This document shows positions 6,775-61,261 of a DNA stretch of 64,000 nt, in pieces. Where the stretch lies: sequence record MT161459.1. One strand, written 5' to 3'. Both the position numbers and the translations under genes were made by a program. The notes below the pieces were generated by a model, which worked only from the letters and a program-made list of their open reading frames with translations, did not search any database and was not told where the DNA came from. Position 1 is the first letter of the stretch, and each line of letters starts with the position of its first letter.

Positions 6775-7151
6775 ATAATCCAGTGACAGCTGATCCGTAC
6801 AAAGAATCAAACATTAACAACAACTGGGAACACCATCGCCCAGGCAATATATGCATCTACATGGGTGATGGCGGCGAGCGTTGGTACGTCATTCGCGAAC
6901 GTCAGGAGACGGATGGCGATCCCAGAGGATACTACAAGGGCAAACAAGTGATGGTCGGTCTGCAGTTGGTATGTGGCGACGATCGCACGATCAACAACAA
7001 CGGCTCTCGCAAGCGTATTATTCAAAAGCACGCAAATGCTGTGAAAGTGGTGGATCGCGAAATGTACATGCAGTACATCGCTCAGAGACTCGAGCACATC
7101 TACGCTTGTGCAGAAGAGCGTATGGAACAACCATTCAACACATCATTCTAA
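6771..7151 (+). CDS. Hypothetical protein
   Basis: ATG at 6771 overlaps the previous stop and is preceded by GGAAG. Confidence 0.65.
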   Translation: MNNPVTADPYKESNINNNWEHHRPGNICIYMGDGGERWYVIRERQETDGDPRGYYKGKQVMVGLQLVCGDDRTINNNGSRKRIIQKHANAVKVVDREMYMQYIAQRLEHIYACAEERMEQPFNTSF

Positions 7152-7159
7152 GAGGCCAT

Positions 7160-7867
7160 ATGACAGACATCGACTTTGAAAGAGTATTCGAGATGCGGGA
7201 TAATCTCCCAGCAGCCGAAGCCAAGATTGCAATCCAATCATACGCCAAAAGCATTGGTATCAAGATTCCAAAGACTGGGATTGGTGTAAAGGGCATGATC
7301 GAGATGCTGATGGACAAAGCTGATCGAGATGCTAATGGATCATTCGAACCGGCAGCCAATTCCAGTCCGCCTGATGTAGACACAAACCGAGTTGTGATCT
7401 CGGATCCGGAACTGACTGAAGTCCTCCAGAATCAATACGAGGTATTGAGCGAACTGCCAGGCGGCCAATACACAGATCCTGGAGCGATTCTATCTCACGC
7501 ATCCGACAAGCGTATGATGGTCGTTGGCGAGCCTATCAGCGAGACTGGATTCACTCCGGATCAGGAAGAGAAGTTACAAGCGGCCATTACTCGTATCAAC
7601 GAGATCGAAGAGGGTGCGTTCGTTCTGCCGGAGAACTACGAACCTCGTAACGATCTGATCGGGCGTGCTCCTGACGCATATTTGAATCTGCCATACTGGA
7701 TCCTCGATTGGATCATCAGCGCTGGCCGAGATTGGAAGTGCAAGGTCAAGGAGTACGATGATGCGAGCGAAATCGTATATCTATACGACTTGCTGTACTA
7801 CATCCGTCTGAACGGTAAGGTCATCGTTCGCGAGACTCGCAACAGCCACTACCACCATTTGTCGTGA
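7160..7867 (+). CDS. inh: Inh, inhibitor of prohead protease / minor head protein
   Basis: AKIAIQSYAKSIGIKI, LPENYEP, LPYWILDWI and YYIRLNGKVIVRETRNS match T4 Inh as recalled. Start at SD GAGG + ATG 7160. Confidence 0.88.
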   Translation: MTDIDFERVFEMRDNLPAAEAKIAIQSYAKSIGIKIPKTGIGVKGMIEMLMDKADRDANGSFEPAANSSPPDVDTNRVVISDPELTEVLQNQYEVLSELPGGQYTDPGAILSHASDKRMMVVGEPISETGFTPDQEEKLQAAITRINEIEEGAFVLPENYEPRNDLIGRAPDAYLNLPYWILDWIISAGRDWKCKVKEYDDASEIVYLYDLLYYIRLNGKVIVRETRNSHYHHLS

Positions 7868-11381: not shown

Positions 11382-11409
11382 AATCAACAATAACAAGAAG
11401 GATTTTCGT

Positions 11410-11757
11410 ATGATGGAATTACCAGCAGTCGCCAAATTATGCTATGAAAATGTCCGCTGCTTTGCCAAGGTATTCGGCGATCACGGTTATGCACCGTGGG
11501 ACGAACTAAGTGAGGATAAACGGAACGATTTGATCTTAGACGTTCGGTCTATTATTAATGATCCAAACATCACAGCATCAGAGCTACATGATATTTGGGT
11601 ACGCCGCATGGTAGATAGAGGATGGACTTATGGTCCAGTCAAGGACTCCGTTGCTATGACTCGCCCCGACATTTGCGCGTACGAGTTCAAGTCTCCGATC
11701 CACCAACAGGAACTGAGGTTGATTATTTGTGTAGTGCGTATTGCTACATCCTGCTAA
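11410..11757 (+). CDS. RyR-domain protein
   Basis: LHDIW.RRMVDRGWTYGPVKD...RPDI. Start moved to ATG 11410 after AAGGA. Confidence 0.75.
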   Translation: MMELPAVAKLCYENVRCFAKVFGDHGYAPWDELSEDKRNDLILDVRSIINDPNITASELHDIWVRRMVDRGWTYGPVKDSVAMTRPDICAYEFKSPIHQQELRLIICVVRIATSC

Positions 11758-15774: not shown

Positions 15775-16412
15775 GCAAGCGTTTTCAGCGCTTCGCTTAG
15801 AGCGAGGAACGCGGTATCTTGCGAAATTTTTTGGGGCTCTACTACTGCAGGATGTTCCACGGTAGGTTCCTTGGATTCGTATACCGGTTTGACGTATGCA
15901 TTTGGCGCACTTGGGCCCCAAACCACATCAACGCCAACTGTCAGTTTGAATCCTTCCTGCACTTCGTTAATCCCGTAGGAGTTACGTTTCAGAGTTCCGA
16001 GTCCGCGAGAGCTGACTCCAGGAATCCATCCAGCACGAATAAGCGCTGCAGTTTTATCCCCCTCCGCGTAATCCCCCTCGACGATTCGAGCTCTACCCCA
16101 TACATCGTTGCCTCTCCACTCCAAATGCTCTATAATAATAGCGGCGTGTAGTGGATCTGGCATTGATCGTTGTGGATGGTTCAACTCCCCAAGGGCTTGG
16201 TTTGTGTTTACTTGTTCCTTGATGTATTTAGCAACCGCTTCTTGAAGGACCTTTTTTGGGTAGAGACGCTCGTTGCCATTCACTACCTCAGCCTGCAAGA
16301 ATACACCCTCGATGTACAACTTTCCGTTGACTTCTTTGGACTCCACAAACATTTTCTGATCGCCAGCTTTACCTGGCTGACCCCAATCTTCTACTAGCAG
16401 GATCGGTTCCAT
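15771..16412 (-). CDS. gp21: Prohead protease gp21
   Basis: LYIEGVFLQAEVVNGNERLYP, ALGELNHP, GVSSRGLG, VDVVWGPSAP. Confidence 0.97.
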   Translation of the reverse strand: MEPILLVEDWGQPGKAGDQKMFVESKEVNGKLYIEGVFLQAEVVNGNERLYPKKVLQEAVAKYIKEQVNTNQALGELNHPQRSMPDPLHAAIIIEHLEWRGNDVWGRARIVEGDYAEGDKTAALIRAGWIPGVSSRGLGTLKRNSYGINEVQEGFKLTVGVDVVWGPSAPNAYVKPVYESKEPTVEHPAVVEPQKISQDTAFLALSEALKTLA

Positions 16413-16413
16413 T

Positions 16414-16893
16414 TTAGATCCCCATCTGCTTGCGCTTCTTCAAAGCCTTCTTAGTCTTGCGAAGTGCGCGAACTTGTCCACTTGGGTTAGCGCGTCTGGT
16501 TTTTGCAGCTTTGCGTGCAATTTGACGGCGTTGACCTTTAGACAGTCCAGTTGTTTGAGTTGCGTTGCGCTCGCGAGTTTTACGGTCTTTCGTTCGGGTA
16601 ATGATACCCATCGAGTTGACGTGACGCACGATTGATTCTTCCACACTAACTTCTTCTCGAAGTGACAGCATCGCCAGCGCTTCGATTGATTCATCAGTAT
16701 TTAGCATGCGTTCCAACAGCGTGTCAACATCGGATCCGAATGTTGACTCCAGTGTCAGCAACTTTTGTTTTGATTCTTCAACTTTTGCAGTAACGAGACT
16801 CTCCAGTACGTCGAACTCTTCGTCCGATTCAACCATACGGCCTGTTTGGGAGACGCGCCATTTTGCAACCACTTGTTCTTTTGTGATGGACAT
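16414..16893 (-). CDS. gp68: Prohead core protein gp68
   Basis: IVRHVNSMG.ITRTKDRKTRERNA.QTTGLSK..RRQIARK. Start moved to ATG 16893 with SD AAGGTG. Confidence 0.93.
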   Translation of the reverse strand: MSITKEQVVAKWRVSQTGRMVESDEEFDVLESLVTAKVEESKQKLLTLESTFGSDVDTLLERMLNTDESIEALAMLSLREEVSVEESIVRHVNSMGIITRTKDRKTRERNATQTTGLSKGQRRQIARKAAKTRRANPSGQVRALRKTKKALKKRKQMGI

Positions 16894-16911
16894 TTTAGCA
16901 CCTTGTGTTAT

Positions 16912-16936
16912 TGACGGCGGGACACTCCCGCCGTCA
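16912..16936. other. Strong intergenic hairpin between gp67 and gp68
   Basis: TGACGGCGGGA-CAC-TCCCGCCGTCA (11 bp, no U tract). Confidence 0.6.
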
Positions 16937-17092
16937 TTATTCGTCGTCTTCCTCAAAGGGAGCAGCGTTAGCTGCAATCTCTCTACGGGTAGCTTCAATC
17001 GCTCCGCGCGTTCGTGTGGACATCTCGTACTCGAACGCTTGTTTTGCGGCCATGAAATCCCCATCCTGCACAGCTTGCATAAATTCATTCAT
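16937..17092 (-). CDS. gp67: Prohead core protein gp67
   Basis: MNEFMQAVQDGDFMAAKQAFEYEM..., acidic C-terminus. Lies between gp20 and gp68. Confidence 0.85.
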   Translation of the reverse strand: MNEFMQAVQDGDFMAAKQAFEYEMSTRTRGAIEATRREIAANAAPFEEDDE

Positions 17093-17093
17093 T

Positions 17094-18647
17094 TTAGAAA
17101 TCCTCTGGTTCTTCTTCTTTGTCTTTGAGGACAGGGTCCTCCAATTCTTTCTCGATGCGTTCGCGCTCCTGCTCAATCTCTTCATCGGACATCTTCAAGA
17201 CGTTCTTCATGATGTAGTCGTGGGATAGATACTTGCCAGTAATGTCAGCAAGTGCTTGGACTAACCCAACGCGTCGTTCCATGATTTCAACGTCTTTGAT
17301 CTCTTCGAAGTATGAGTCCTTGGAGAACACTACGCGAATATTTTCTCGTTCATCTTCCCACTCCTGTTCGGACATCTTGCCTTTCAATAGCAGGTTGGTC
17401 TTGAGCGGATCGGTGAAAATGACTTCAAATTGTTGCTGCAGACCGCGGATCAATTTGGTGAACTGGAGCTCATCGCGCGTGATATCGCTACCGCCGCCAA
17501 ACTGAACGCCACCACCTTCTTGAGGTAGGCGGGAGAGAGGAATTTTCATGCTCTCGTACAGCTTGCGGTTGAACCAACGCACGTCATCCATTTCACCCAT
17601 AGATTGGGCACCAGGAAGTGTCGAAACTTCGGTAGTTGCTTTACCATCTCGGCGCATCAGCCAGTAATCTTCTGTCATAGACAGGTTGTTCGAGCTGTTC
17701 TTGACTTTGCCAGTAGCACTATCGTAAACTACGCGGTTCTTCATCCCCTGCATGACATTATTTAGATGCATGGTTGCTTTCTTGTTTGGCATGTTGCCAA
17801 CATCGATGTAGAACACGCGACGTTCTGGAGCTCTGGTGATACGATAGATGACCATCGCATCTTCCAGCATCTTCAACTGGTTTGCAGGTTTGATGACGTT
17901 GTGCAGGTATCCAATAATGCTTTTGCCGTCAATGTCACATTTCCCGCTATGAGAATATACCATCGCCATCGCTGGAATGATTACGCGCGTGTTGGTATTG
18001 ATGATATTGTAGCGAGCATCGTCGTTGCCAGTATATGTGAAAAATTCACGATATCCCTTGTATACATCGTTGCCATTTTCGTTTTCTTTGTAGATCTCAC
18101 GAACGTATTCAACAGATCGCGGATCCAGAAGTCGAAGCTCCTTGATTCCCTCTTTTGGTTTCTTAGGGTCGATCATCTTGTGGAAATACAGACGACTGTC
18201 GATATACCATCTACGGAAATGACGCTTGCCTTCACGCTCAAAATTCAGCAGCTTGAGGATCTCACGAAACTCATCACGGACAGTGTTCTTGACAGACTCA
18301 GACCATTTGGTTTTGTCGAGATCCAAGTACACCGTATCTTTGTTGTCTTCTTGAACGATCGCATCGTTGATAATCTCGTCAATTGCGTTGTCTACCTCGT
18401 GGTATTTGGATAGCGATCTATACTGGTTGACGAGATCTTTCGTGTTCTGAATTCTAGGAGCGCTGCCATAGAATGCTTGATTGAAACTCTTACGAGGAGC
18501 TGACGTATCAACGTGTTCAAGCTCTGTAGCTCCGTCCGCGTTGTCGGGCATCGCAAAGCTGTCAATTCGATTGTCAAGATCCTTATCGAGATCTTTGCCT
18601 GAGGCTGTAAACCACGGCATCAAAAAACTTAGAATTGGGTTGCTCAT
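17094..18647 (-). CDS. gp20: Portal protein gp20
   Basis: FRRWYIDSR, LEDAMVIYRITRAPERRVFYIDVGNMP, EDYWLMRRDG, ITRDELQF. Confidence 0.98.
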   Translation of the reverse strand: MSNPILSFLMPWFTASGKDLDKDLDNRIDSFAMPDNADGATELEHVDTSAPRKSFNQAFYGSAPRIQNTKDLVNQYRSLSKYHEVDNAIDEIINDAIVQEDNKDTVYLDLDKTKWSESVKNTVRDEFREILKLLNFEREGKRHFRRWYIDSRLYFHKMIDPKKPKEGIKELRLLDPRSVEYVREIYKENENGNDVYKGYREFFTYTGNDDARYNIINTNTRVIIPAMAMVYSHSGKCDIDGKSIIGYLHNVIKPANQLKMLEDAMVIYRITRAPERRVFYIDVGNMPNKKATMHLNNVMQGMKNRVVYDSATGKVKNSSNNLSMTEDYWLMRRDGKATTEVSTLPGAQSMGEMDDVRWFNRKLYESMKIPLSRLPQEGGGVQFGGGSDITRDELQFTKLIRGLQQQFEVIFTDPLKTNLLLKGKMSEQEWEDERENIRVVFSKDSYFEEIKDVEIMERRVGLVQALADITGKYLSHDYIMKNVLKMSDEEIEQERERIEKELEDPVLKDKEEEPEDF

Positions 18648-24525: not shown

Positions 24526-24532
24526 TATTTAG
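24526..24532 (-). promoter_or_regulatory. Late promoter CTAAATA for gp15
   Basis: Directly downstream, in the transcription sense, of repeat copy 1. Confidence 0.75.
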
Positions 24533-24534: not shown

Positions 24535-24711
24535 GTGGAGCGTAGCGACACTCCCCGAAGGGGGAGAAATAGAATCTCCTTATACCCTTTAAAGAGACTC
24601 TATAAGTCCCCCCTCTACCGACCTACGGTCGGAGATGTCGCTACGCTCCATCCATTTAAACCTTCTATAACCGTCTATACGGAATCCCATCACTAACCTG
24701 ATAGATCGTAC
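24535..24711 (-). repeat. ~180-bp dispersed palindromic element, copy 1
   Basis: Reverse complement closely matches 52874-53061. The core is bounded by a 15-bp inverted repeat TGGAGCGTAGCGACA (24536-24550) / TGTCGCTACGCTCCA (24636-24650). Confidence 0.9.
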
Positions 24712-24720
24712 TGATGCTAA

Positions 24721-25509
24721 CTAGAACGCTTCTAGATCATCGAAAGAATCGGGTATAGACAGCTTGTGGGGTTCTACTGGGAATACTACTGGATTGACTC
24801 CGCCTCCGATGAGGTTATCGAACTCTTCCACGAAGGTATCAGCTTCCGCAGCAATTGCGTTATCCTCGGAATATTCTTCGATATTGGTATCGGCACGACC
24901 GTCCAACATACGGATTGGGTCCAACTGAGAGTCGAACAGCAGATCTGTAGCGTCGAACTCCGGCTTGAGTTCCTCTCCAGAATAAACAAACTTCTGAGCG
25001 GTGATTTTGTACTGACTAACTTGACCAGCTTGTAGGAATGGAGCATTCGGTTCCACCCAGATCACCTCAAAGAGACCCTTGCTCATCGGGAAGAATATCA
25101 AGTCCCCTTCTTTAACTACTTCGCCATCGGCCTGTATACTGAATAACTCTGGACTGACTACAAGAGTCATCTCATCATTCACCTGCATACCGAACTTGCT
25201 AAAGAACTCTTGCTGACCGCTAAACCCATCGAAGCTCTCGATATACATAGCAACTCGATACGCTTTCTTGAATTTGGATTGAAGGTCCTCTCCAAACAGT
25301 TTATCGAAGTTGACAAACTCTCTCCGGATATAGAACATTTCAATCCCCTTCATTTGAACCGCTTCCGATACAAGCGATCGAGCGAGAGCTTGGGTATTTG
25401 CGTTGTTGAAGTTATTCACGAACGGATTTGTAATGTGATTGTCGTGGGTATCGTTATAGCCAGACTGATTTTCCAGTCTGGCAAATAGATGCGAACTTTT
25501 CTTGTACAT
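24721..25509 (-). CDS. gp14: Neck protein gp14
   Basis: FGEDLQSKF, FFSKFGMQVNDE, EGDLIFFPM..LFEVIWVEP..PFLQ.G. Confidence 0.95.
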   Translation of the reverse strand: MYKKSSHLFARLENQSGYNDTHDNHITNPFVNNFNNANTQALARSLVSEAVQMKGIEMFYIRREFVNFDKLFGEDLQSKFKKAYRVAMYIESFDGFSGQQEFFSKFGMQVNDEMTLVVSPELFSIQADGEVVKEGDLIFFPMSKGLFEVIWVEPNAPFLQAGQVSQYKITAQKFVYSGEELKPEFDATDLLFDSQLDPIRMLDGRADTNIEEYSEDNAIAAEADTFVEEFDNLIGGGVNPVVFPVEPHKLSIPDSFDDLEAF

Positions 25510-34575: not shown

Positions 34576-36722
34576 AGAACCCTTACCCAAATGTTGACCG
34601 TGATGAACGGTTGAAGGTTATTCATTGCATTGGCGACCTCGCCTGGACGGAATTTAACTTGATCCTCACGATACCGCTTGAATCCAGGACCATCATCATC
34701 CGGATCGAATTGGCATCCGCCGATCAATACATCACCCACTGGATCTGCGATCAACGCTTTCTCGTTACTGACTAGAGGAGGAAGGTTGGTCGTCAGAATA
34801 GTGTTTCCGATCGATCCGCCAGTTCCGCCCGCCGAGTGTCTCGGATTGCCGTTAAGATCCTTGTCGTTGTTGTTCAACCCAAAGTTTGGATCATTCGGGT
34901 TGGATTCGTTCCATGATACCAGAACTTTGCCTTCTCCAAATCTACGCCATTCTCCAAATCCCATGTAGGCTTTGGGGTTGTTCGGGTTGTTGGCATTCAT
35001 GTAGATTGATCCGACTGGGTACATCGACATCATGATACTGCTTACATCATGGATCCGAACCTTGACCTCATCGTCCGGATCGTCGCGCGCAGTAGTTGCA
35101 CTTGGATTGTTGACGTCCACATATTCGATCTTATCGACTCGACTCACGAGCTGTTCACTCACTAGATATCGAGCGTCAGCCTTTTCTTGGATTCCGCCAG
35201 CGCCATCCCAATCGAGAGTGGTTCCGATATCGTTATTGAACCAGCGGATACACACGATGTCTTCGTGATGCAGCTCTTCGTTGATGATAAACTCGCGCCA
35301 CCGATCATTCAGATCCATCGCAACGCTGAAGTCGCCGCCAGATTGAACCCACGCACCACCCTGGGAGATACATTGGACTTCATCGGACGCGTCAGCTCCC
35401 TCGCAGATAAACGCTGGAAGATCCGCATCACCAGCCTTCGTCAGATGACGACCGTTGACCGTTACCTCGAAGCTGAATGGGTTGAAAGTCTCGCGTTCGA
35501 GCAGATCGAACTCATCCAAACTGAATCGAACCTTATTCGGAAGATCGCCGACCCAACGCTGACCAGCAATAGTTGTGATATCAGTCGGAGCCATCTTGAC
35601 GTCATACATCCGGATCGTGTACCGTTGATACGAGCTACGATACGTTGCAAGTCCGTCCATGTATGTCACGATGGTGATGACGTCACCACGATCGCAAGGC
35701 TCATTCAGACGGATGGTTTTGCCATCCAGCACATCCAGCTTATAAACGCTGAATTTGTACGTCTGAGCTGTTGCAGACTTCAACTTCGTTGCTAGTCCAG
35801 CATCGTTGCCGATATACTCCTGAGTGCTCTCATCGTATTGCAGGAATGCTTTGTTAAGCGCATCCACGACGATGAAAATGACATCGGCGTCCATCGGTTT
35901 AGCGCCGGCGGTAAACTTGACTCGAATTGAGTTGGTCGTCTTTTCCGCAGCAAATTTGATGATGGTTGTCGATTCCAATACGCTTTTGGTAATGGATCCA
36001 AACAATCCAGCCCAGTATCCAACATACCCATTAGTTCCACCTGCTGAGGTAATTGTGATGTCAGCAGGAACCGGAGTTCGGTTGGTCATGGAACCGTAGT
36101 CGGAGTCCTCGTTGATCTTGTCTCCGTAGTACAGCAGGTTACCACGACGGTATACCTCGATAGCTCCTGGATTGTAACTGGATGAGAAGATGTCTGTGAA
36201 GTCTGTCTGACCTGCCGTAGCGATGATCTCCTTCTTGGCTACGGTACTCAGATCGGAACTAGTGATCCCAGTTACCAACTTGTTGTCTGCATACTCCCAC
36301 TTACCAGGAGTGCAGTAGACGAGCTCAGCATCCAAGTAGTTGCGCCACAGTTTGTGAGACGTATTAGATCCCTTGATCGTGTCAGATCCGCCTGGGATCA
36401 ATCGAACTGCGTTGACGGCCCAAGAACCGTTGACGTCTCGAACGCGGATGACCCGACCATAGTCGGATGGTTTGCCGGTTGGCAATTTCACATCAACCGG
36501 TCCGCGAGTAGTGTCGATCGTATACGCTGCACCGAAGTTGACAGTCAATGGAACTGCTGGATCGGAATAACGCTTCCAGTATCCTGCAGCATGAGGAACT
36601 AGACCATCACCTAGTTCCGAGTAAAGCTCTTGGAAGTTATTGTTGATTTTTTCGCCACCACGACGCATGTAGTCGCCAGTACCGTCATCAACAACGTTCC
36701 CGATTATAATATTCTGTTTCAA
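34572..36722 (-). CDS. gp10: Baseplate wedge / tail pin gp10
   Basis: MKQNIIIGNVVDDGTGDYMRRGGEKINNNF, MYPVGSIYMNA.NPNNP..YMGFG.W, NLQPFITVNIWVRV. Confidence 0.96.
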   Translation of the reverse strand: MKQNIIIGNVVDDGTGDYMRRGGEKINNNFQELYSELGDGLVPHAAGYWKRYSDPAVPLTVNFGAAYTIDTTRGPVDVKLPTGKPSDYGRVIRVRDVNGSWAVNAVRLIPGGSDTIKGSNTSHKLWRNYLDAELVYCTPGKWEYADNKLVTGITSSDLSTVAKKEIIATAGQTDFTDIFSSSYNPGAIEVYRRGNLLYYGDKINEDSDYGSMTNRTPVPADITITSAGGTNGYVGYWAGLFGSITKSVLESTTIIKFAAEKTTNSIRVKFTAGAKPMDADVIFIVVDALNKAFLQYDESTQEYIGNDAGLATKLKSATAQTYKFSVYKLDVLDGKTIRLNEPCDRGDVITIVTYMDGLATYRSSYQRYTIRMYDVKMAPTDITTIAGQRWVGDLPNKVRFSLDEFDLLERETFNPFSFEVTVNGRHLTKAGDADLPAFICEGADASDEVQCISQGGAWVQSGGDFSVAMDLNDRWREFIINEELHHEDIVCIRWFNNDIGTTLDWDGAGGIQEKADARYLVSEQLVSRVDKIEYVDVNNPSATTARDDPDDEVKVRIHDVSSIMMSMYPVGSIYMNANNPNNPKAYMGFGEWRRFGEGKVLVSWNESNPNDPNFGLNNNDKDLNGNPRHSAGGTGGSIGNTILTTNLPPLVSNEKALIADPVGDVLIGGCQFDPDDDGPGFKRYREDQVKFRPGEVANAMNNLQPFITVNIWVRVL

Positions 36723-45462: not shown

Positions 45463-47385
45463 TTAGTTCAGGTTGATTGTAGCGCCGGATACTTGTGCAG
45501 TACCAGTTGCGTCCAACGTTGCATTCGCGCCATGGACCTTAGCGTCACCAGATGCGGTAGCGTTAAACTTACCAGCAGTTTCCATCGTGATGTTCGCCGC
45601 TTTGAGTTTATAGTCCCCAGTAACTTCTTGGGTCATCGATCCAGAGATCGTTGCAGAAACATTGCCTTTCACAGTTGATGTGACGTTACCGTTGACCGAC
45701 TCGGTTACGTTCCCAGTTACTTTGGAATTGACGTTGCCCTCAACAGTCTCAGTGACGTTTCCTCGAACAAACTGCGTGAGGTTGCCATCTACTGTTTGAA
45801 TACAGTTGCCCATGTAGTACAGCGTAGCATTACCCTCAACCACTATGTTCATATCACCTTTGACGTTTAGGTTACGGCCACTTTGAACGATCAAAAAGTC
45901 ATCGCCAACTATCTTAGTCACTCGGCGTCCATCTGGGCTAATCTCCTCGTAGGTACCAGATGGGTGTTTACGGTGGTACCGTTCAGCTCCAGGAGTATCA
46001 TCGAACTCGACAATGTGACCACTCTCAGACTCATACACATGGTTGTACGGATACTTGGCTGCGTATGATGATTTGGGCTCCTCGAATGCAATCCTCGTGT
46101 CTTCTGGGACGTATGGATCTTCTGGACTAGGTTCGGGATCAGCGGCGCGTGCAGAACGCGATAGAACGCGTTGTACAGTTGCCATTTTCATAGGTGCCCG
46201 ATCGTACTGCGATGCCATCTGGGATGCAATAGACACCGGTTCAGACGCCATAGCCATGGATTTTAGCTTCAGAGGTTCCGGTTTCTCATCCATGGATTTT
46301 AGCTTCAAAGGTTCCGGTTTCTCTATGGGATTATCTGGCGCTTTGACCCCATAGGATTCCAAGTTGCCCGTTAGCACGATACGGGCTACGCGAGACGATC
46401 GTCCAGGAGTCTGTCTAGCCCACAGAGAATCTCGCAATCCGTCATATGCGCCCTTCCAATCCTTGGCCTTCATCTTCGCGAGCGTGTTTTTGAACTTAGC
46501 TAGACCGCCAGCTCCCATCTGGAAGCACATGTTCTCCATGGACATCTGACGAGATCGATTCAGAGTGACGTACACTTCACGAAGAGATGAGATGCGAGCA
46601 ATATCAGCGCGGACCTGAGCTAGATCGCGAGCAAACAACTCACTGACCTCAGCGTTGGTGATAGTTCCATCCGTACACACTCGACCGACTTGAGCTGATA
46701 TAGCCGCATTGATCAACCTTGTATCTCTCGTCACTTGGTGGATAAGTAGGTGTCCGATACCAATAGTCGGATAACCCAAGGAATCTGCGTACCACTGCAA
46801 ACGGTATCCTTCATCCTGCCTTAGCATCTTTTCGATAGTAAAGTCAGGATTGTCATCTTCTGCGATGTCTTCTAGTGGCACGTCCGTGGGCGCTACCGCT
46901 AAAGTTGTATTGTCATCTTGAATGTCGACGCTGATGGGACGATTATCTTCGCCGACTATCGCGCCAGATCCAGATGATCCAGATCCTGGCTGTCCTCCGC
47001 CCGCCAACACGTTAAGGTCATTACCGATATATCTCGGATACTGACCTGACGGATCAGAAAATCCTTTGGCTGGATTAGGCTTCTCGACATACGTTCCACC
47101 TAGAGTGCCGATAACCACTCCATCTTGCTTGAATGCATCCCGAAAGAATCCAACTACGTGAGTTCCCTCTACTGCTCCGAGAGGAGTTTGCCCAATGCCA
47201 GACATCGAAGCTGATGTGATACTAGACATTGGGTGCATCCACAACAACTCCTCTGTTGGGATCCCTTGCTCCGCATTCTTCGACTTCTGATCTGTGTGAT
47301 ATGCAAACACCCTGACGCGGATCCGGCCTTGTTTTAGCGGATCGAATCTATCCTCCACCACCCCAGTAAACCATTCTCCTACCAT
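45463..47385 (-). CDS. gp5: Baseplate hub needle / tail lysozyme gp5
   Basis: OB domain WFTGVVEDRFDP...GRIRVR, lysozyme MLRQDEG...D..GYPTIGIGH with the E/D/T triad, and C-terminal VxGNxxxx beta-helix octads. Confidence 0.97.
   Translation of the reverse strand: MVGEWFTGVVEDRFDPLKQGRIRVRVFAYHTDQKSKNAEQGIPTEELLWMHPMSSITSASMSGIGQTPLGAVEGTHVVGFFRDAFKQDGVVIGTLGGTYVEKPNPAKGFSDPSGQYPRYIGNDLNVLAGGGQPGSGSSGSGAIVGEDNRPISVDIQDDNTTLAVAPTDVPLEDIAEDDNPDFTIEKMLRQDEGYRLQWYADSLGYPTIGIGHLLIHQVTRDTRLINAAISAQVGRVCTDGTITNAEVSELFARDLAQVRADIARISSLREVYVTLNRSRQMSMENMCFQMGAGGLAKFKNTLAKMKAKDWKGAYDGLRDSLWARQTPGRSSRVARIVLTGNLESYGVKAPDNPIEKPEPLKLKSMDEKPEPLKLKSMAMASEPVSIASQMASQYDRAPMKMATVQRVLSRSARAADPEPSPEDPYVPEDTRIAFEEPKSSYAAKYPYNHVYESESGHIVEFDDTPGAERYHRKHPSGTYEEISPDGRRVTKIVGDDFLIVQSGRNLNVKGDMNIVVEGNATLYYMGNCIQTVDGNLTQFVRGNVTETVEGNVNSKVTGNVTESVNGNVTSTVKGNVSATISGSMTQEVTGDYKLKAANITMETAGKFNATASGDAKVHGANATLDATGTAQVSGATINLN
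46254..46323. repeat. 36-bp tandem duplication within gp5
   Basis: CCATGGATTTTAGCTTCA(G/A)AGGTTCCGGTTTCTC twice, encoding EKPEPLKLKSM twice. Confidence 0.9.
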
Positions 47386-51786: not shown

Positions 51787-52761
51787 ATGAATTTTAATTT
51801 AGACACAGCTACCAACTACATCAAGAGTATTCCAGATAAGTTTACGCTGGAGAACGCTCAGGAGCTTGCCAATAACGCACTCGAGAGTTACGCAGATAGC
51901 ATTGTAGAGACTCCAGACTATGCCAAATTTATGAGGGTCGTTGAGAACCAAGACCTAGCACGAACCAACACTTTCGTTGTTCGATTTGAGGATTTTCGGA
52001 GCACTATCAATTCGGATGGTATTTTGGGAATGGCGGAAGGTATTATTCCAGATGGAGTAAAGGGGGCGTTTGGTGGGATTACCGGAGGGATCTCCAAAGC
52101 TATTGGAGGAAATAACTGGTCACGCATACAAGACATTGCGTACAACCAATCTCAGAAATTTCTGACTCCTAAGATCAAGAGTATCATGGGTGCATATGAC
52201 CCAAGTCTGGTTCGGTTGATCCCAGGCGCTGGGGAGTTTATCGATATGTTTACCGGAGCTGGATATGACGTCAACAAGGACTTAGCACTTATGGTGAAGT
52301 CCGTCAACTTGCCAGGTACAGCGTTCGAGACTCAAGTCAACAAAACTGACCGCAAGCCGTTTCACGAAGTTCGTGGACGTACATACGACAATATCAGGAT
52401 GACTCTGTATTGTACTCCTGGATATGCAGAGCGTATCTGGTTCCTGGCATGGATGAATAGTGTACAGAATCCCAAACGAGGAACTTATGGATTTTATAGC
52501 AAATATGCCAAGAACATCGACATTGTTACTCTGGACCGAAAGTCTATCAAAACATCTGTAGTACACTGCGATGGATGCTTCCCGATCAGAGTTGGAGAAA
52601 TCCAGTTGGATTTTGATCAAGGGAATCAAGTTGCAACATTCGAGGTAGAGTTTGCCATTAGCACAATGACACACTTGGAATCCAAAGGATCCCAGAACTT
52701 TGTTGCTGGCGCGGAGAGTATTTTCCATCGAGTCAAGGGCGCTATTGGCGCACTACGTTAA
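51787..52761 (+). CDS. gp54: Baseplate tail-tube initiator gp54
   Basis: DLARTNTFVVRF, MVKSVNLPG, WMNSVQNP, CFPI.VGEIQLDF...NQVATFEVEF (tube-like fold). Confidence 0.85.
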   Translation: MNFNLDTATNYIKSIPDKFTLENAQELANNALESYADSIVETPDYAKFMRVVENQDLARTNTFVVRFEDFRSTINSDGILGMAEGIIPDGVKGAFGGITGGISKAIGGNNWSRIQDIAYNQSQKFLTPKIKSIMGAYDPSLVRLIPGAGEFIDMFTGAGYDVNKDLALMVKSVNLPGTAFETQVNKTDRKPFHEVRGRTYDNIRMTLYCTPGYAERIWFLAWMNSVQNPKRGTYGFYSKYAKNIDIVTLDRKSIKTSVVHCDGCFPIRVGEIQLDFDQGNQVATFEVEFAISTMTHLESKGSQNFVAGAESIFHRVKGAIGALR

Positions 52762-52764
52762 TCA

Positions 52765-52790
52765 GAGGCCACCTTCGGGTGGTCTTTTTT
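52765..52790 (+). terminator. Intrinsic terminator after gp54
   Basis: GAGGCCACC-TTCG-GGTGGTCTT followed by a T run. Confidence 0.85.
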
Positions 52791-52873
52791 GTTGGTAACG
52801 CCATTGTACCGGAAGTTAGCGTTGAACCAAACTCCTTCCTATAACCGTGTATAAGCGATTGGTGACCAATCCT

Positions 52874-53061
52874 GTACGATCTATCAGGTTAGTATTCGAA
52901 ATCGATTTTAGCGGTGGTATAGAAGGTTTAAATGGATGGAGCGTAGCGACATCTCGACCGTAGGTCGATAGATGGTGAAGAGGGGGACTTATAGAGTCTC
53001 TTTAAAGGGTATAAGGAGATTCTATTTCTCCCCCTTCGGGGGAAGTGTCGCTACGCTCCAC
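52874..53061 (+). repeat. ~180-bp dispersed palindromic element, copy 2
   Basis: Inverted copy of 24535-24711 with the same 15-bp inverted repeats at 52937-52951 and 53046-53060. Confidence 0.9.
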
Positions 53062-53083: not shown

Positions 53084-53090
53084 CTAAATA
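53084..53090 (+). promoter_or_regulatory. Late promoter CTAAATA for gp26
   Basis: 24 nt upstream of the gp26 ATG. Confidence 0.75.
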
Positions 53091-54046: not shown

Positions 54047-55863
54047 AAACAGAACAACAGATAGTGGAGGACTCCAGTCTAAAGCTGGCTGTCCAGCTTG
54101 ATGATGTTCGGAAGCAGACTGTTGATTTGGGAGTCGCGATAGATCTAAACACAGACGCCAACGTGGATGTCGCCAAGTCGAATGAAACGTTGGTTAAGGC
54201 AATAGATCAAGAAACGAGTTCCATCAAACGAGCTACCGAATACGTAGACACCGCAGCTTATTCCAAACGGAATGAGATAGATGTCAATGAGAAGTACCAA
54301 AAGGCGTTAGAACGCCGAACCGAGCTCGAGAATAAACTCAATGCTCAACAACCAATCATTCCATATTCAGAAACCGATCCGGAACGATTTAAGCCCAAAC
54401 AAAACACCAAACCGGAAGCTCCTGCTACCCCGAATGAGCCGGCATTTAATGGAACGCTTGAAGAATATCTCAAGGCCAATCTTGGATCGCTAAGTGATTT
54501 CAAGAAGCAGTTGCGCGAAGAACGGAAGGCCAAGGATAGAGAGAATGGAGAGGGGCTTGGAATAGCTAAGATTGCCAAGAATGCCATCCAGACGACGATG
54601 TCAGCAGGTTCCAATGCTATTTCATCTCTAGCGGATACCCTCCTACAAGGAATTCCTGGAGCGAGTATGGCTCGCAATGCGATATCTGGGACTACCAAGT
54701 TTGTCAAGGAGTCTGTCGTAGGTGGGTTCGAGTCAAGAAAGAAAACAAGGGAGCAATACGAGGCCAAGAAGTCTGATCTGACGTCCAAGTTCGAGAAGAT
54801 GCCACAATCTGCAGCACCTGCACCTGAATCTGCGCCTCCATCAACCGACGAGAAAATCCGACAGGATAGAGAGAACAAGAAGTCGGGAGAAGAGCGGACG
54901 GATCGCAAAGAGAATAGTCGCGAGCGCAAAGAAAATGAAAAGCGTCACAAATCCTTGATAGACGTGCTCAAGAATAACCAGATGTGGACATTGTTGGGTG
55001 GGATCTTCACTATGCTAGTTCCGATGTTTACTGGATTGCTGGGAACGACGAGAGGTATTCTCGGGGGCGTATTGAAACTAGGTCCAGCGCTGATTGCAAT
55101 GGGAGCTAAGCTCGTATCTGGAATGGGAGCAGCCATCGCTAACAGCCTGAAGCGAATAATGCCAGACTTCATGAAAGGCAAACTACCGGATGCCAAATCT
55201 CCAAGGATGGATCCGAAGTCAGGCAAGCCAACTGCTGAGGTTGATCCAAAGACGGGCAAACCCAGAACTACTACCACAACGACGACGACCAATACATCAT
55301 CATCTAAAGAGACGTCGAAGATTGAGCGCGTTAAAGATGGTATGAAGGGAGCTCAAACGGCGGGCGGTGAAGCGGCAGAAGCAGCTGGATCCAAAGCAGC
55401 GTCAGCTGGTGCCAAAACTGTAGGCAAGGCAGCTGGTAAGGGAGCGGCGGTCAAAGTAGCAGCTAAGGTATTGGGCAAGACCCTACTACGATTCATTCCG
55501 TTTGTTGGAACGGCTATGCTAGCTTACGACGCGTATACCATAGCGGATGAATTGTCCGGCGGAAAACTGACCGACTCGTTAATGTCCCTCAAAGACAAGG
55601 CCGTATCTGGAGCGACTGAAGCTCTTGGAATGTCGGCTGGCACAGAACCAGTTTCTGATGAGGTTGACGTTCACGAGAAAGGCGTCCAACAAGCTGAAAA
55701 GCAGGCAGAGGCTAAGAAGACGCAGGATGCCAGAGCTACAGCGGCTTATCAAGCAACGGCATTCAATACAACCAACAACAAGACTTATGCTGCATCCGGA
55801 TTTGCATTCGGTAGTGATAGCATGATGCAGTTGCAACCATATGGAGTTCAATCGGCGCGATGA
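54043..55863 (+). CDS. gp29: Baseplate hub / tape-measure protein gp29
   Basis: 606 aa, helical and low-complexity, with hydrophobic segments LLGGIFTMLVP and LLRFIPFVGTAML. Lies after the chaperones. Confidence 0.8.
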   Translation: MKTEQQIVEDSSLKLAVQLDDVRKQTVDLGVAIDLNTDANVDVAKSNETLVKAIDQETSSIKRATEYVDTAAYSKRNEIDVNEKYQKALERRTELENKLNAQQPIIPYSETDPERFKPKQNTKPEAPATPNEPAFNGTLEEYLKANLGSLSDFKKQLREERKAKDRENGEGLGIAKIAKNAIQTTMSAGSNAISSLADTLLQGIPGASMARNAISGTTKFVKESVVGGFESRKKTREQYEAKKSDLTSKFEKMPQSAAPAPESAPPSTDEKIRQDRENKKSGEERTDRKENSRERKENEKRHKSLIDVLKNNQMWTLLGGIFTMLVPMFTGLLGTTRGILGGVLKLGPALIAMGAKLVSGMGAAIANSLKRIMPDFMKGKLPDAKSPRMDPKSGKPTAEVDPKTGKPRTTTTTTTTNTSSSKETSKIERVKDGMKGAQTAGGEAAEAAGSKAASAGAKTVGKAAGKGAAVKVAAKVLGKTLLRFIPFVGTAMLAYDAYTIADELSGGKLTDSLMSLKDKAVSGATEALGMSAGTEPVSDEVDVHEKGVQQAEKQAEAKKTQDARATAAYQATAFNTTNNKTYAASGFAFGSDSMMQLQPYGVQSAR

Positions 55864-58127: not shown

Positions 58128-58212
58128 GGGGATGTGGTGTAATTGGCAGCCACCCAAGTTTCAAACGCTTGTGTCGAAAGACGTCTCGGTTCGAGTCCGA
58201 GTATCCCTACCA
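58128..58212 (+). tRNA. tRNA-Leu(CAA)
   Basis: Cloverleaf with a long variable arm. CAAGT-TTCAAAC-GCTTG. CCA end. Confidence 0.9.
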
Positions 58213-58218
58213 AACTCC

Positions 58219-58304
58219 GCGAGATTAGCCGAATTGGTTTAGGCAGCAGATTTAAAATCTGTCGGCTTTGCCACCTGTGGGTTCGAGTCCCACATCTCGC
58301 ACCA
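58219..58304 (+). tRNA. tRNA-Leu(TAA)
   Basis: GCAGA-TTTAAAA-TCTGT, long variable arm, CCA end. Confidence 0.92.
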
Positions 58305-58317
58305 ACTAAGGAACACC

Positions 58318-58785
58318 ATGAAACAGAAACGTGTATTGTTGGGTACCTATGGTTATGCGTGTCGTAATGGCACCTTCATGATCATGGATCCAAAAGTTAT
58401 TGAAGCGTTCAATGAGCATCTCAAGGCCAACGGCCCATCTGCGATGTGCTTTGGTCAATCTCAGTTCAATTGCGCCGATGACGTGACTAAGTTTGAAACT
58501 GATCTGACTGACGTCATTGGCCGTCTGCACTCTGTGGAGTGGTTTGTCAATCCGAACAAGACTGTCAGCGTCTACGGTACCGTAGAACCTCTCAAGCACC
58601 CTGTGTGGAAAACCAGGAGTGTTGAGTTTAGCCTGCGGTCAATTGCTGATGTGATCCGAGAAGATATGATCAAGCCTGACGTTCCGCGTCAACGCGGCGG
58701 TAGATACGTAGTCATCAAACGCATCGTGTCTTGGGACATTCAAGATCCCGCACAATGTGCGCTGACGATCGATGATCTGAAATAA
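58318..58785 (+). CDS. Hypothetical protein, possibly a degenerate prohead-protease-fold protein
   Basis: SD AAGGA. Weak colinear resemblance to gp21 motifs by eye. Confidence 0.65.
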   Translation: MKQKRVLLGTYGYACRNGTFMIMDPKVIEAFNEHLKANGPSAMCFGQSQFNCADDVTKFETDLTDVIGRLHSVEWFVNPNKTVSVYGTVEPLKHPVWKTRSVEFSLRSIADVIREDMIKPDVPRQRGGRYVVIKRIVSWDIQDPAQCALTIDDLK

Positions 58786-58794
58786 GGAGTTGTC

Positions 58795-59046
58795 TTGTCT
58801 AAATACATCGGTATAGTAGACGGCAATGACAAAGATGGTTATAGCGGCTATGTAGCCAACCTCAATGGATCCTGCTTGTTTGCAGGATCCACGATGGATG
58901 AGCTAATTCAAGATGCTGACGAATCTGTTGTTGCTCATGTAGAGTTTTTGCTGGAGAATGACTTCAGTTTACAGCCAGACAGTATTGATCTGGTCATCAA
59001 TGACGATCAACAAGTAATCGTCATTCAATACCCCAAACCAATTTAA
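58795..59046 (+). CDS. Solo HicB-like antitoxin domain
   Basis: Y.GIV....DGY.G.V.NL.G.C...G.TMDEL...A.E.V..H.E.LLE pattern. SD AAGGAG with TTG start. Confidence 0.7.
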   Translation: MSKYIGIVDGNDKDGYSGYVANLNGSCLFAGSTMDELIQDADESVVAHVEFLLENDFSLQPDSIDLVINDDQQVIVIQYPKPI

Positions 59047-59054
59047 GGATTTGT

Positions 59055-59459: not shown

Positions 59460-59499
59460 AGTTGAATCTCAGGAGATTATCGTTGATAGTCTCCTCATC

Positions 59500-59587
59500 G
59501 GAAGGTTGGCAGAGAGGCCGATCGCGACACTTTGCTAAAGTGTAGAACGGAAACGTTCCATGGGTTCGAATCCCATACCTTCCTCCA
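59500..59587 (+). tRNA. tRNA-Ser(GCT)
   Basis: ACACT-TTGCTAA-AGTGT, long variable arm, CCA end. Confidence 0.92.
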
Positions 59588-59607
59588 ATTTTACAGAGGA
59601 TTTTGTC

Positions 59608-59736: not shown

Positions 59737-59739
59737 CCT

Positions 59740-59907: not shown

Positions 59908-59972
59908 TATCGTGCTCCTTCTAACGAGGGGGCATATCAAATCATCTTTGATATGCCAACGAGGAATACATC

Positions 59973-60456: not shown

Positions 60457-60469
60457 TTTAGACACCGTG

Positions 60470-61260: not shown

Positions 61261-61261
61261 A

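Follow-up and report, generated by a model that had tools for sequence, protein, structure and literature searches.

The RNase III sites of phage T7 are a few long, imperfect intergenic hairpins that are related to one another and keep their places between blocks of genes; all of them are co-oriented with transcription, and they have neither flanking mini-hairpins nor a conserved tip. In T4-like genomes, PeSL cassettes are short repeated intergenic units of a stem-loop and a promoter (Arbiol et al. 2010; Comeau et al. 2014), consisting of a small terminator and a sigma-70-type early promoter, and they are grouped in hyperplastic regions (PMC2839356, PMC4122927). Phage T4 has at least five dispersed, promoter-linked origins: oriF and oriG are made up of a middle promoter and an unwinding element, oriE has an iteron layout, and plasmids that carry origin fragments can replicate during infection (Kreuzer and Brister 2010, PMC3016281). 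Bacterial intergenic palindromic repeats of the REP/BIME, ERIC, BOX and Correia types (REP families: PMC3733652) number tens to hundreds per chromosome, often have a link with a RAYT transposase and lack even spacing. The CapR operator at the ICP1 capsid promoter is a single, perfectly conserved promoter-upstream site (Netter et al. 2021, PMC8096241).

The element described here is similar to PeSLs in that it is a short repeated intergenic stem-loop with a promoter in T4-like genomes, and its copies, too, appear to recombine with one another and to shuffle modules. However, its unit is 130–230 nt long with a conserved palindrome of 55 nt, and it occupies seven evenly spaced loci, mostly beside late promoters and core genes, which are shared across genera. 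PeSLs have many copies in hyperplastic regions and mediate indels between close relatives; several of the seven loci here lie between core genes. On its own strand the element showed no sigma-70 promoter in a consensus scan: the one 9-of-12 match was on the opposite strand of copy B (copies A and B are described below), copy A had no match, and the TATAAG/TATAG boxes had no partner hexamer at a usable distance. By sequence comparison, these elements are an old family of hairpin-forming intergenic elements at fixed positions in Ahp1, Aeh1/Ah1, PX29, phiAS5 and their relatives. No earlier description of the family was found in the literature searched, and with respect to that literature and Rfam it is previously undescribed.

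The window, that is, the whole 64-kb stretch of DNA analysed, is the final 64 kb of Aeromonas phage Ahp1_CNU-2021 (MT161459.1). A first-pass annotation of this stretch had reported two inverted copies of the element, and pairwise alignment and local blastn gave about 86% identity over about 190 nt between copy A (24535-24711, minus strand) and copy B (52874-53061, plus strand). A repeat search found two blocks of exact complementarity between them (24553-24612 with 52982-53041, 60 nt, 100%; 24632-24669 with 52918-52955, 38 nt, 100%), and with these blocks and a fold z of about −6 to −7, the repeat is well beyond chance. Base-by-base checking located the previously described 15-bp arms (IR-L and IR-R) and the CCCC-TTCG-GGGG hairpin in both copies, and the conserved block beyond the arms (Table 1). 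The late promoter CTAAATA that had been placed next to each copy is also there; before gp15 it starts 3 nt past IR-R, which is 2 nt past the CTCCAC end of copy A. The downstream genes were named correctly as well, gp15 by the annotation of the record and gp26 by a Pfam T4_baseplate match together with the orthologous gp54/gp26 locus in Aeh1. But "twice-repeated" is true of the window only, and blastn and nhmmer showed that the whole Ahp1 genome has seven copies.

Table 1 Features of copies A and B of the element and of their surroundings in the 64-kb window
Feature	Position	Strand	Details
Rho-independent terminator of upstream gene gp54	52764..52787	+	just 5' of copy B
Copy B upstream (U) module	52850..52936	+	also holds TATAG-type boxes
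Copy B U-module TATAAG box	52850-52855	+	5' box
Copy B U-module conserved block, GTACGATCTATCAGGTTAGT	52874-52893	+	outside the arms
Copy B left arm IR-L, TGGAGCGTAGCGACA	52937..52951	+	contains mini-hairpin GC-GTA-GC
Copy B hairpin H1, TCGACC-GTA-GGTCGA	52954..52968	+	GNA triloop closed by C-G
Copy B core hairpin	52982..53034	+	53 nt; 6-bp G/C base, 3x3 internal loop, 14-bp stem, tip AAGGGTA
Copy B hairpin H2, CCCCC-TTC-GGGGG	53030..53042	+	competes with the core-hairpin base for the C run
Copy B right arm IR-R, TGTCGCTACGCTCCA	53046..53060	+	sharp 3' end of element (CTCCAC)
gp26 late-promoter core CTAAATA	53084..53090	+	23 nt past copy B; ATG at 53115
Copy A upstream (U) module	24651..24734	-	
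Copy A U-module 5' box TAGAAG	24729-24734	-	overlaps final codons of gp14
Copy A left arm IR-L, TGGAGCGTAGCGACA	24636..24650	-	
Copy A hairpin H1, CCGACC-GTA-GGTCGG	24618..24632	-	
Copy A core hairpin	24560..24613	-	
Copy A hairpin H2, CCCC-TTC-GGGG	24553..24563	-	
Copy A right arm IR-R, TGTCGCTACGCTCCA	24536..24550	-	
gp15 late-promoter core CTAAATA	24526..24532	-	ATG at 24507-24505

All seven Ahp1 copies (c1 to c7) lie between genes and point the same way as the gene that follows, and the gaps between them are 25–39 kb. The element is modular. Its central 53-nt hairpin is constant across the seven copies save for homopolymer and 1-nt indels, and on either side of it stand small hairpins rich in G+C, many of which have GNA triloops. 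These triloops lie on both sides of the core but mostly on the sense strand, and a symmetric arrangement about the core was rejected. Conserved sequence reaches about 90–100 nt past the left arm as the U module, which is common to six of the seven copies and yet is the most variable part. The copies are mosaics in which 5' and 3' variants occur in differing combinations, and orthologues differ by swaps of whole modules; in c4, c6 and c7, hairpins are substituted by different hairpins at the same position, and c4 has no IR-L. The arms start with TG and finish with CA. A separate canonical terminator stands ahead of four of the seven copies; the one before copy B has similar counterparts before c3, c4 and c7. 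A coding role was ruled out, because the copies differ by 1-nt indels and homopolymer length and have stops in most frames (all except one).

Across genera, the center of the element is an imperfect palindrome of about 55 nt with the conserved tip YTC-W-TTAAAG-N3-TATAAG-RR. The conserved helix is 18–21 bp long; in the cross-genus alignment 83.7% of its cells were paired, against 43–66% with the partner slid, and 8 pairs were changed on both sides. On this alignment, compensatory changes preserve the central helix across genera, and the sequence of the tip is conserved also. The compensatory pair noticed earlier in H1 (TCGACC/CCGACC) is a real two-sided change, but by itself it is weak evidence because copies swap modules by recombination, and the covariation of the central hairpin is the better case. 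When folded as single-stranded DNA, both strands were far better than shuffles.

As RNA the two strands differed, and the element could conceivably work in read-through or polycistronic transcripts, as a processing or stabilising hairpin, or by pausing or ending transcription between one unit and the promoter of the next. The sense strand folded better than the antisense strand, both for a 206-nt stretch (−83.5 vs −68.2 kcal/mol) and for the core (−27.8 vs −21.3 kcal/mol). G-U-type pairs on the sense strand filled 28 cells vs 6 for A-C (roughly 9 vs 5 events), and single changes to G-U were seen in L022 and in the Aeh1 copies A5 and A8. This G-U excess and the co-orientation with transcription of all seven Ahp1 copies (phiAS5, six of seven) lean towards an RNA role; the hairpin-for-hairpin replacements in c4, c6 and c7 fit it too, as does the Aeh1-type hairpin, which resembles a bidirectional terminator with its A-rich 5' flank and 3' T run. 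The copies resemble the T7 RNase III sites in being a small set of long, imperfect, mutually related intergenic hairpins whose positions are conserved, but some copies here are inverted, the tip is conserved and mini-hairpins flank the core, and any processing would be putative only. However, the Ahp1-type core has no T run, three of the eight Aeh1 copies are antisense to the local genes, and pairs near the tip are broken in the variants L023 and L026 and in Aeh1 A3 and A4. A canonical terminator already stands before several Ahp1 copies, and since late promoters are downstream of the element, late transcripts would not contain it. Rfam gave only tRNAs for the window at the gathering threshold, and at a permissive threshold only chance-level miRNA or snoRNA matches for both element types; L006 gave no match. 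An RNA role also leaves the even spacing of the loci unexplained, and we consider it rather unlikely.

The link to late promoters became stronger. CTAAATA occurs 35 times in the whole Ahp1 genome, 21 of them 8–60 nt before a Shine-Dalgarno sequence and start codon, and Nolan et al. (2006) derived the same late-promoter motif for Aeh1 (PMC1524935), which makes it a credible late-promoter core. It lies 0–50 nt past the 3' end of five of the seven Ahp1 copies (0–2 nt for c2, c3 and c4, 23 nt for c1 and 50 nt for c7), while c5 has TATAAT 8 nt past the element. Element and promoter are laid out in this way also before gp15 of Aeh1 and of phiAS5 and before the PARP-like gene of Aeh1. Thus the earlier proposal of a cis-acting hairpin element tied to late promoters held up; its candidates had been an origin, a clamp-loading enhancer, a packaging signal, a small RNA or a MITE-like element.

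This layout would suit a promoter-proximal operator or insulator, with the element as a cluster of binding sites, at the −35 position, for a sequence-specific phage protein, either of the CapR zinc-finger type or, in Ahp1, one of the small two-HTH proteins. Binding might tune or shield the next, mostly late, promoter, and perhaps check read-through transcription or the sliding clamp. The sharp 3' end that abuts a −10-type element in Ahp1 (CTAAATA or TATAAT) and the identical layout before gp15 and the PARP-like gene speak for this possibility, and so do the neighbors: CapR-domain genes adjoin a copy in Ahp1 (AHP1_1431), Aeh1 (ORF213c), phiAS5 (ORF0008) and also L022, and the Ahp1-type core is always accompanied by a small HTH gene whose product has 19 invariant C-terminal residues. 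There is precedent for such repression, since PLE CapR, whose zinc-finger DNA-binding domain derives from T5orf172 homing endonucleases, represses a promoter by binding at −35 and upstream of it, and the late promoter of I-TevI is repressed by I-TevI itself (PMC8096241). The element is like the CapR operator in its perfectly conserved promoter-upstream sequence and adjoining CapR-domain genes, but ICP1 has a single site, whereas the present element is multi-copy and structured and would be a candidate binding site. On the other side, there are just seven sites vs dozens of promoters, no promoter adjoins Ahp1 c6 or Aeh1 A2, A4 and A7, some copies face the opposite way, and the HTH family was not found in Aeh1 and had at most one weak match in phiAS5. 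The even spacing is again left unexplained. An operator is thus possible, but we hold it only tentatively.

The distribution of the element in other phages was then compared by locus. BLAST found diverged homologues in Aeh1, Ah1, PX29, phiAS5 and relatives at 6–9 places per genome, and nhmmer (--max) gave exactly seven loci per genome in Ahp1, Aeh1 and phiAS5, a constant number which counts for an origin-like reading. In Aeh1 and in phiAS5, five of the seven loci have an orthologue in Ahp1, namely those upstream of gp15 and of the PARP-like giant gene, the gp54/gp26 and pseT.2/vs.1 loci and one near gp49, although the core genes of these genera are only about 67–69% identical in DNA. The loci are 19–44 kb apart in these genomes of about 220 kb, which is much more even than random: P(min gap ≥ observed) was 4e-5 for Ahp1, 2.5e-4 for Aeh1 and 4e-3 for phiAS5, where the evenness was noticed post hoc and the three tests depend on one another because the loci are orthologous. 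Almost evenly spaced loci that are conserved among several Aeromonas T4-like phages indicate a cis-acting role across the whole genome, not a repeat that arose by chance, and the even spacing favors a role in DNA at genome scale. The orientation of the element can flip between phages at the same locus, which would be tolerable for a DNA site. A metagenome scan found the Ahp1-type core in ten contigs, every one a close relative of Ahp1, the IMG/VR scan found it in one unrelated contig, and no genome representative had it; a degenerate tip pattern found only Ah1, phiAS5 and Aeh1 in IMG/VR.

We give an origin-like or recombination-initiating DNA site, acting at genome scale, a probability of about 0.3 on sequence grounds. 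Besides the number, spacing and conservation of the loci, the compensatory changes in the helix and the folding of both strands as single-stranded DNA count for it. Similar to oriF, oriG and oriE of T4, the elements are dispersed, promoter-linked sites of about 100 bp. The Aeh1 and phiAS5 cores are A+T-rich (0.63–0.82 vs a genome mean of 0.57) with G+C-rich hairpins on either side, and the long versions (L017/L006, L018, L023, L026 and L027) have an A+T-rich stretch and 2–5 direct repeats of about 18 nt, which resembles the layout of an iteron origin and of T4 oriE. These long versions precede a gene for a protein of about 300 aa, which had no Pfam, PHROG or PDB-sequence match, and whose AlphaFold model (pLDDT 61) had no fold match. 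However, the iteron-like repeats are absent in the seven compact Ahp1 copies, and the Ahp1-type core is not A+T-rich; the 7/7 co-orientation in Ahp1 and the G-U excess also count against an origin. The mapped T4 origins share no motif and are not palindromic repeats (PMC3016281), but here one palindrome is repeated. A positional match to oriF, oriG and oriC was rejected, as the Aeh1 homologues of these regions (uvsY, gene 34 and rI.-1) are roughly midway between elements. The adjoining promoters fire away from the element, which is upstream of them, whereas in oriF and oriG the promoter comes before the unwinding element. No MotA-box-like motif was seen by eye at −30 of the element's boxes.

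Recombination between copies is suggested by the module swaps and by contig L007, which joins the flank of c3 to the flank of c2; other metagenome contigs break within the element. In addition, unrelated prophages of Aeromonas siphophages carry the identical Ahp1-type core, as does an integrase-bearing element (a contig with a large serine recombinase), and the core there adjoins CapR/T5orf172 nuclease-like genes. These findings, the mosaic copies and the TG and CA ends of the arms could be accounted for by a selfish cassette, that is, a non-autonomous mobile or recombination-spread module which is linked to homing-endonuclease islands and merely tolerated by the phage, much like a MITE or the PeSL cassettes. 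But the same seven, evenly spaced loci in different genera do not fit it. In most comparisons of orthologues, core and arms were no less conserved than the genes beside them (in L014, core 98%, IR-L and H1 100%, flanks 72–77%), and no empty site was found, as all orthologous loci of the metagenome relatives were occupied and five loci were common with Aeh1 and phiAS5. As had been stated for the window, neither a target-site duplication nor a transposase was present: none of the seven Ahp1 copies lies between direct repeats, and the only hint of a cognate enzyme was a weak HTH_Tnp_1-like similarity (E ~ 1e-3) in a small HTH protein, with no catalytic domain. Nor do terminal repeats mark both ends, since the U module continues past the left arm in six of seven copies and c4 has no IR-L. 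With no duplications, a 5' boundary beyond the inverted repeats and loci conserved between genera, the simple MITE once suggested is now unlikely, and the wider selfish explanation is quite improbable. REP/BIME, ERIC, BOX and Correia repeats are comparable as modular extragenic hairpin repeats that evolve in concert, and GTAG in the arms recurs in many REPs (for REP, PMC3733652), but the present element has seven copies and belongs to a virulent phage, and neither a RAYT nor an HUH gene was identified. CRISPR-repeat mimics, retrons and ribozymes were rejected, with no reverse transcriptase, family match or supporting feature found.

If the element is a start site on DNA for replication or recombination-dependent replication at genome scale, the palindrome and its flanking hairpins might open or extrude when the DNA is unwound, for example by the neighboring promoter or by supercoiling. 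The extruded form would be a structured single-strand or junction site for the helicase-loading and priming machinery of the phage or for a site-specific protein. Evenly spaced sites could then provide quick, uniform copying of a large genome and an equally quick, uniform supply of sliding clamps to the adjoining late promoters. Capture of the core by the serine-recombinase contig and the prophage islands would make sense as DNA hitch-hiking on the T4-like replisome. A stronger form, in which seven evenly placed structured DNA sites form a dedicated grid that runs replication or recombination starts genome-wide and loads clamps for late promoters, with mobile elements having copied the module, seems unlikely to us; if it were true, the T4-like replisome of the infecting phage would carry along such elements as prophage islands and a satellite-like element that bears an integrase.

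In the large T4-like phages, hardly any cis-acting DNA has been described beyond promoters, terminators and the few origins mapped in T4. An element at conserved positions about 30 kb apart across genera could be a handle on the replication, recombination or late transcription of a 220-kb virulent phage. It also marks recombination-prone sites which break metagenome assemblies, connects phage genomes with islands of the homing-endonuclease type, and hints at possible parasitic elements in Aeromonas. The separate CCTCCTTCGGGAGG terminators are more PeSL-like, and an indel in L014 ends beside one of them.

The first-pass annotation had described, upstream of gp15 and gp26, two inverted copies of a palindromic element within the record MT161459.1 of Aeromonas phage Ahp1_CNU-2021 (218,317 bp, Straboviridae; the window covers its final 64 kb, window position = record position - 154,317). 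A repeat search recovered both, with blocks of 60 nt and 38 nt at 100% complementarity, and alignment of copy A (before gp15) with copy B (before gp26) gave about 86% identity across about 190 nt. The parts that had been listed were all verified base by base: the 15-bp arms TGGAGCGTAGCGACA / TGTCGCTACGCTCCA, the CCCC-TTCG-GGGG hairpin, the hairpin YCGACC-GTA-GGTCGR with its two-sided difference between the copies, and the GTACGATCTATCAGGTTAGT block outside the arms. CTAAATA follows the right arm (IR-R) at 3 nt for gp15 and 23 nt for gp26, as stated, and its reading as a late-promoter core is credible in Ahp1, where 21 of the 35 CTAAATA sites in the genome are placed 8-60 nt before a Shine-Dalgarno sequence and start codon, mostly of structural genes; the motif was also derived for Aeh1 by Nolan et al. 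(PMC1524935). The observation on the window copies was confirmed, and a copy search of the whole genome and of related phages enlarged it to seven Ahp1 copies, diverged homologues and a covarying helix.

A profile search run unfiltered found exactly seven copies (c1-c7) in the Ahp1 genome and no degenerate extras; every copy is intergenic and oriented like the gene downstream of it. The element has a sharp 3' end (CTCCAC) that mostly abuts a promoter -10 element: CTAAATA lies 0-2 nt away in c2, c3 and c4, 23 nt in c1 and about 50 nt in c7, TATAAT lies 8 nt past the end of c5, and a ribosome-binding site directly adjoins the end of c6. With late promoters taken to stand at about 6% of genes (21 of approximately 324 predicted starts), it is very unlikely that five of seven copies would lie beside one by chance (about 2e-5, a rough estimate on that frequency).

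The copies are modular, in the order (often) canonical terminator, U module, left arm (IR-L), hairpin H1, core of 53 nt, hairpin H2 and IR-R. The U module (about 90 nt) starts with a TAnnAn box, contains several TATAG/TATAAG boxes and is missing from c5. H1 is replaced in c6 and c7 by ACATCC-GAA-GGATGT positioned before IR-L, c4 has GATGC-GAA-GCATC in place of IR-L, H2 of c6 is CTCC-TAC-GGAG, and the IR-R variant TTCACTACGTTCAC is common to c3 and c7. The 5' or 3' variants are combined differently among the copies, so the copies exchange parts. A terminator made up of CCTCCTTCGGGAGG and a T run lies upstream of c3 and c7 (record ~17218-17240 and ~140090-140110) and was found again in prophage islands. 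One relative (L014) is without 1.2 kb (record 15994-17218), and this deletion, which ends at the terminator before c3, resembles PeSL-type shuffling.

Positions of the Ahp1 element copies (core 22-mer, record coordinates, unless marked), of captured cores and of partner genes
Feature	Sequence	Position	Strand	Context
Copy A (c2)	Ahp1 window	24535-24734	-	core 22-mer at record 178,907
Copy B (c1)	Ahp1 window	52850-53061	+	core 22-mer at record 207,321
c3	Ahp1 record	17,426	+	upstream of AHP1_391 and PARP-like AHP1_401
c6	Ahp1 record	55,008	+	downstream of HTH gene AHP1_1091, close to endonuclease VII
c5	Ahp1 record	84,373	-	upstream of AHP1_1431
c4	Ahp1 record	109,522	-	amid tail-fibre genes
c7	Ahp1 record	140,301	+	Rz1-vs.1 gap
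Regions of interest, viral contig	L006	7425-8581; 8891-10438(-)		L006/L017
Siphophage island	L018	9194-16169
Siphophage island	L023	9598-16232
Siphophage island	L024
Siphophage island	L026	6684-14138
Two-HTH paralogues (n=4)	Ahp1 record	34767-35210; 52470-52691; 54481-54837; 126745-127098		outside window
CapR-domain genes	Ahp1 record	83333-84277(-); 94657-95772(+)		outside window; related to T5orf172 homing endonucleases
CapR-domain gene	Aeh1	148189-148794	-	related to T5orf172 homing endonucleases
CapR-domain gene	phiAS5	7133-7828	-	related to T5orf172 homing endonucleases

The element is not coding, and family scans of the window, both element types and the viral contig L006 matched the element to no known RNA family. 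It also lies outside the definition of the PeSL cassettes of other T4-type phages (PMC4122927). The interpretations offered by the first-pass annotation are supported in part: the element is not a classical MITE, and a cis-acting function was favoured. Full-text searches found no description of the element, and such repeats go unmentioned in the papers examined on Aeh1 and on T4 mobile DNA. It is a new kind among phage intergenic repeat elements, with a putative function and a distribution that is striking and testable.

A metagenome core scan gave ten contigs (L007-L016), all Ahp1 relatives (75-96% identity), and every orthologous locus covered by them holds the element. Core and arms usually match or exceed the flanking genes in conservation; identity in L014 is 98% for the core and 100% for IR-L plus H1, against 72-77% for the flanks. 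Contigs frequently terminate within the element, and in L007 (OERK01000279.1, ~11400-11640) the upstream flank of c3 is joined across the element to the gp15 flank of c2, which is either an inversion by recombination of inverted copies or an assembly chimera.

BLAST of the Ahp1-type sequence against 50,697 phage records matched only Ahp1. The gp14-gp15 gap of Aeh1, orthologous to the copy A site, contains a diverged homologue, in which a G+C hairpin (GTCGC-GCCA-GCGAC) and GCGAAGC are followed by the central hairpin GACAAAATAGATTCTC-ATTAAAGATCTATAA-GAGATTTTATTTTGTC, a second G+C hairpin and, at the end, AGTC-TTC-GACT, which overlaps the late promoter GACTAAATA. Clear relatives of IR-L and IR-R, GAGCGTAGCGAG and GTTCGCTACGCTCAC, are present in some of the Aeh1 copies. 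BLAST with the Aeh1 element matched 13 records at 6-9 places each, all Aeromonas Straboviridae (Aeh1, Ah1, avDM12-TAAL, PX29, AsFcp_1/2/4, phiAS5 and phiWae14). Whole-genome mapping showed seven loci each in Aeh1 and phiAS5 (one Aeh1 locus holds two copies in tandem), and all seven are common to the two phages: before gp47, near gp49, before the PARP-like giant gene, in the gp54-gp26 gap, before gp15, in the pseT.2-vs.1 gap and in the gp52-nudE gap. Five of them are Ahp1 loci too (c3, c6, c1, c2 and c7). Co-orientation with local genes (5/8 copies in Aeh1, 6/7 in phiAS5) is looser than in Ahp1. At two loci the element faces opposite ways in Aeh1 and phiAS5, and at pseT.2/vs.1 Ahp1 has a sense copy where Aeh1, PX29 and phiAS5 have an antisense one.

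In the fold of the Ahp1 core, a 6-bp G/C base leads through a 3x3 internal loop into a 14-bp stem that includes two G-U pairs (-27.8 kcal/mol as RNA, -21.3 for the opposite strand). The full unit, from arm to arm, forms a closed multi-branch fold with z of about -6 to -7 relative to shuffles, as RNA or single-stranded DNA and on either strand. An alignment was made of 14 distinct central hairpins, drawn from Ahp1 and five other loci of Ahp1 type, five copies in Aeh1, PX29 and phiAS5. A single pairing register is kept in all 14, with 83.7% paired cells compared with 43-66% once the partner is shifted by 1-3 columns, and two-sided changes occur at eight pairs. The entire basal stem is G-C in Ahp1 and A-U in Aeh1, and C-G stands against G-C between Aeh1 and PX29; L026 has three Watson-Crick pairs where Ahp1 has the 3x3 internal loop. 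The tip is conserved in sequence (YTC-W-TTAAAG-N3-TATAAG-RR). On these alignments the covariation is consistent with a hairpin, and equally with a symmetric protein-binding site in the duplex. G-U-type pairs exceed A-C pairs on the sense strand (28 vs 6 cells, but only about 9 vs 5 events), giving a mild lean to that strand as the folded one. A hairpin for RNA processing, stability or termination is a rival reading that we consider rather unlikely; RNA processing does not explain the even spacing of the copies.

Gaps between the Ahp1 copies on the circularly permuted map are 37.6, 29.4, 25.1, 30.8, 38.6, 28.4 and 28.4 kb. For seven random points on a circle, the probability of a minimum gap of at least 25.1 kb is 4e-5, for a pattern seen post hoc, and that of a maximum gap of at most 38.6 kb is 2e-4, which is largely implied by the first result. 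Gaps are 24.9-43.6 kb in Aeh1 (minimum-gap P = 2.5e-4) and 19.3-43.8 kb in phiAS5 (P = 4e-3), tests that depend on the Ahp1 one because the loci are orthologous. This comparison shows the locus arrangement to be old and retained across the three phages.

Positions conserved across genera, a constant number, the compensatory helix and the conserved tip speak for selection on a cis-acting function more than for a merely tolerated repeat. Neither promoter control nor RNA processing explains the even spacing, which is expected of a DNA process at genome scale, so we ranked first a putative origin-like or recombination-start role (probability roughly 0.3), in which the element would serve as a DNA site at genome scale. 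T4 has at least five dispersed, promoter-linked origins, fragments of which give plasmid replication in infected cells (PMC3016281), and the element resembles them in dispersal and promoter linkage; however, T4 origins have no common motif, unlike this repeat. Also against such a role, the elements are not at homologues of the uvsY, gene 34 or rI.-1 sites, and neighbouring promoters point away from them. The A+T-rich palindrome flanked by G+C hairpins is a hint in its favour: Aeh1 and phiAS5 cores have an A+T content of 0.63-0.82, most of them exceeding 95% of genome windows; Ahp1 cores are not A+T-rich. Further hints for an origin-like role are the iteron-bearing long versions and the capture of the core by an integrase-bearing element and by prophage islands.

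The exact Ahp1 core occurs in three other settings, namely a viral contig, Aeromonas siphophage prophages/phages and the T4-like L021/L022. The contig (L006/L017, IMGVR_UViG_3300005076_000271, 21.7 kb, unrelated to Ahp1) encodes a large serine recombinase at one end, alongside genes without family matches in the half examined, and its core lies within a gene-free, repeat-rich stretch of about 1.2 kb with many c(GAA)g hairpins; it may be an Aeromonas satellite-like or integrative element borrowing a T4-like phage cis element. In the siphophages (L018-L020, L023-L026) the core lies in an island in the gap between tape-measure and distal tail genes; in L018, L023, L024 and L026 the island also holds small ORFs, a two-HTH gene, a gene for a ~300-aa protein and a nuclease-like gene of CapR plus T5orf172/MUG113 type. 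A captured element makes up the initial part of a non-coding stretch of 1.3 kb. Further mini-hairpins come next, then an A+T-rich segment, direct repeats (2-5, each about 18 nt) varying from locus to locus, and CTAAATA, and the ~300-aa gene, whose product was assigned no known fold, lies downstream. The T4-type late-promoter motif GCTAAATA is found about 200 nt before this gene, in a host siphophage that is not T4-like. The T4-like metagenome phage L027 (1-900) has the distal half of the long stretch before a 300-aa homologue and beside endonuclease VII. This half contains mini-hairpins and an A+T-rich segment as well as 4-5 GTTCAAACGGTGAAAAAT repeats, which occur in both orientations, and CTAAATA; its neighbourhood is that of c6.

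In every such setting, a gene for a small two-HTH protein lies before or near the captured core. The family, with an invariant C-terminal 19 residues (GLTAAGASTYISNFKTGKW), is limited to phages and prophages of Aeromonas, always near an Ahp1-type core, and is absent from Aeh1 and phiAS5 except for one weak phiAS5 match. CapR plus T5orf172 nuclease-like genes are also close to the captured core. In Ahp1, HTH gene AHP1_1091 is upstream of c6, and AHP1_1431, CapR/T5orf172-like and 41% identical to the island gene, is downstream of c5 as the lone reverse-strand gene from the gp41 region to the gp61 region. Aeh1 and phiAS5 have a CapR-domain gene between gp14 and gp15, divergent from gp15 and adjoining the element. 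CapR-like or HTH proteins are candidate ligands if the element is a promoter-upstream operator or insulator, for which the action of CapR at the ICP1 capsid promoter (PMC8096241) is a comparison; this is possible, at a probability slightly below that of the origin-like role, and promoter control leaves the even spacing unexplained. A selfish cassette spread via recombination or homing endonucleases seems quite improbable. Elsewhere in the window, two tandem 34-nt copies (97% identical, 36 nt apart) occupy 46254-46323, and a plus-strand cluster of 15 tRNA genes at 58128-63894 continues at the record start.
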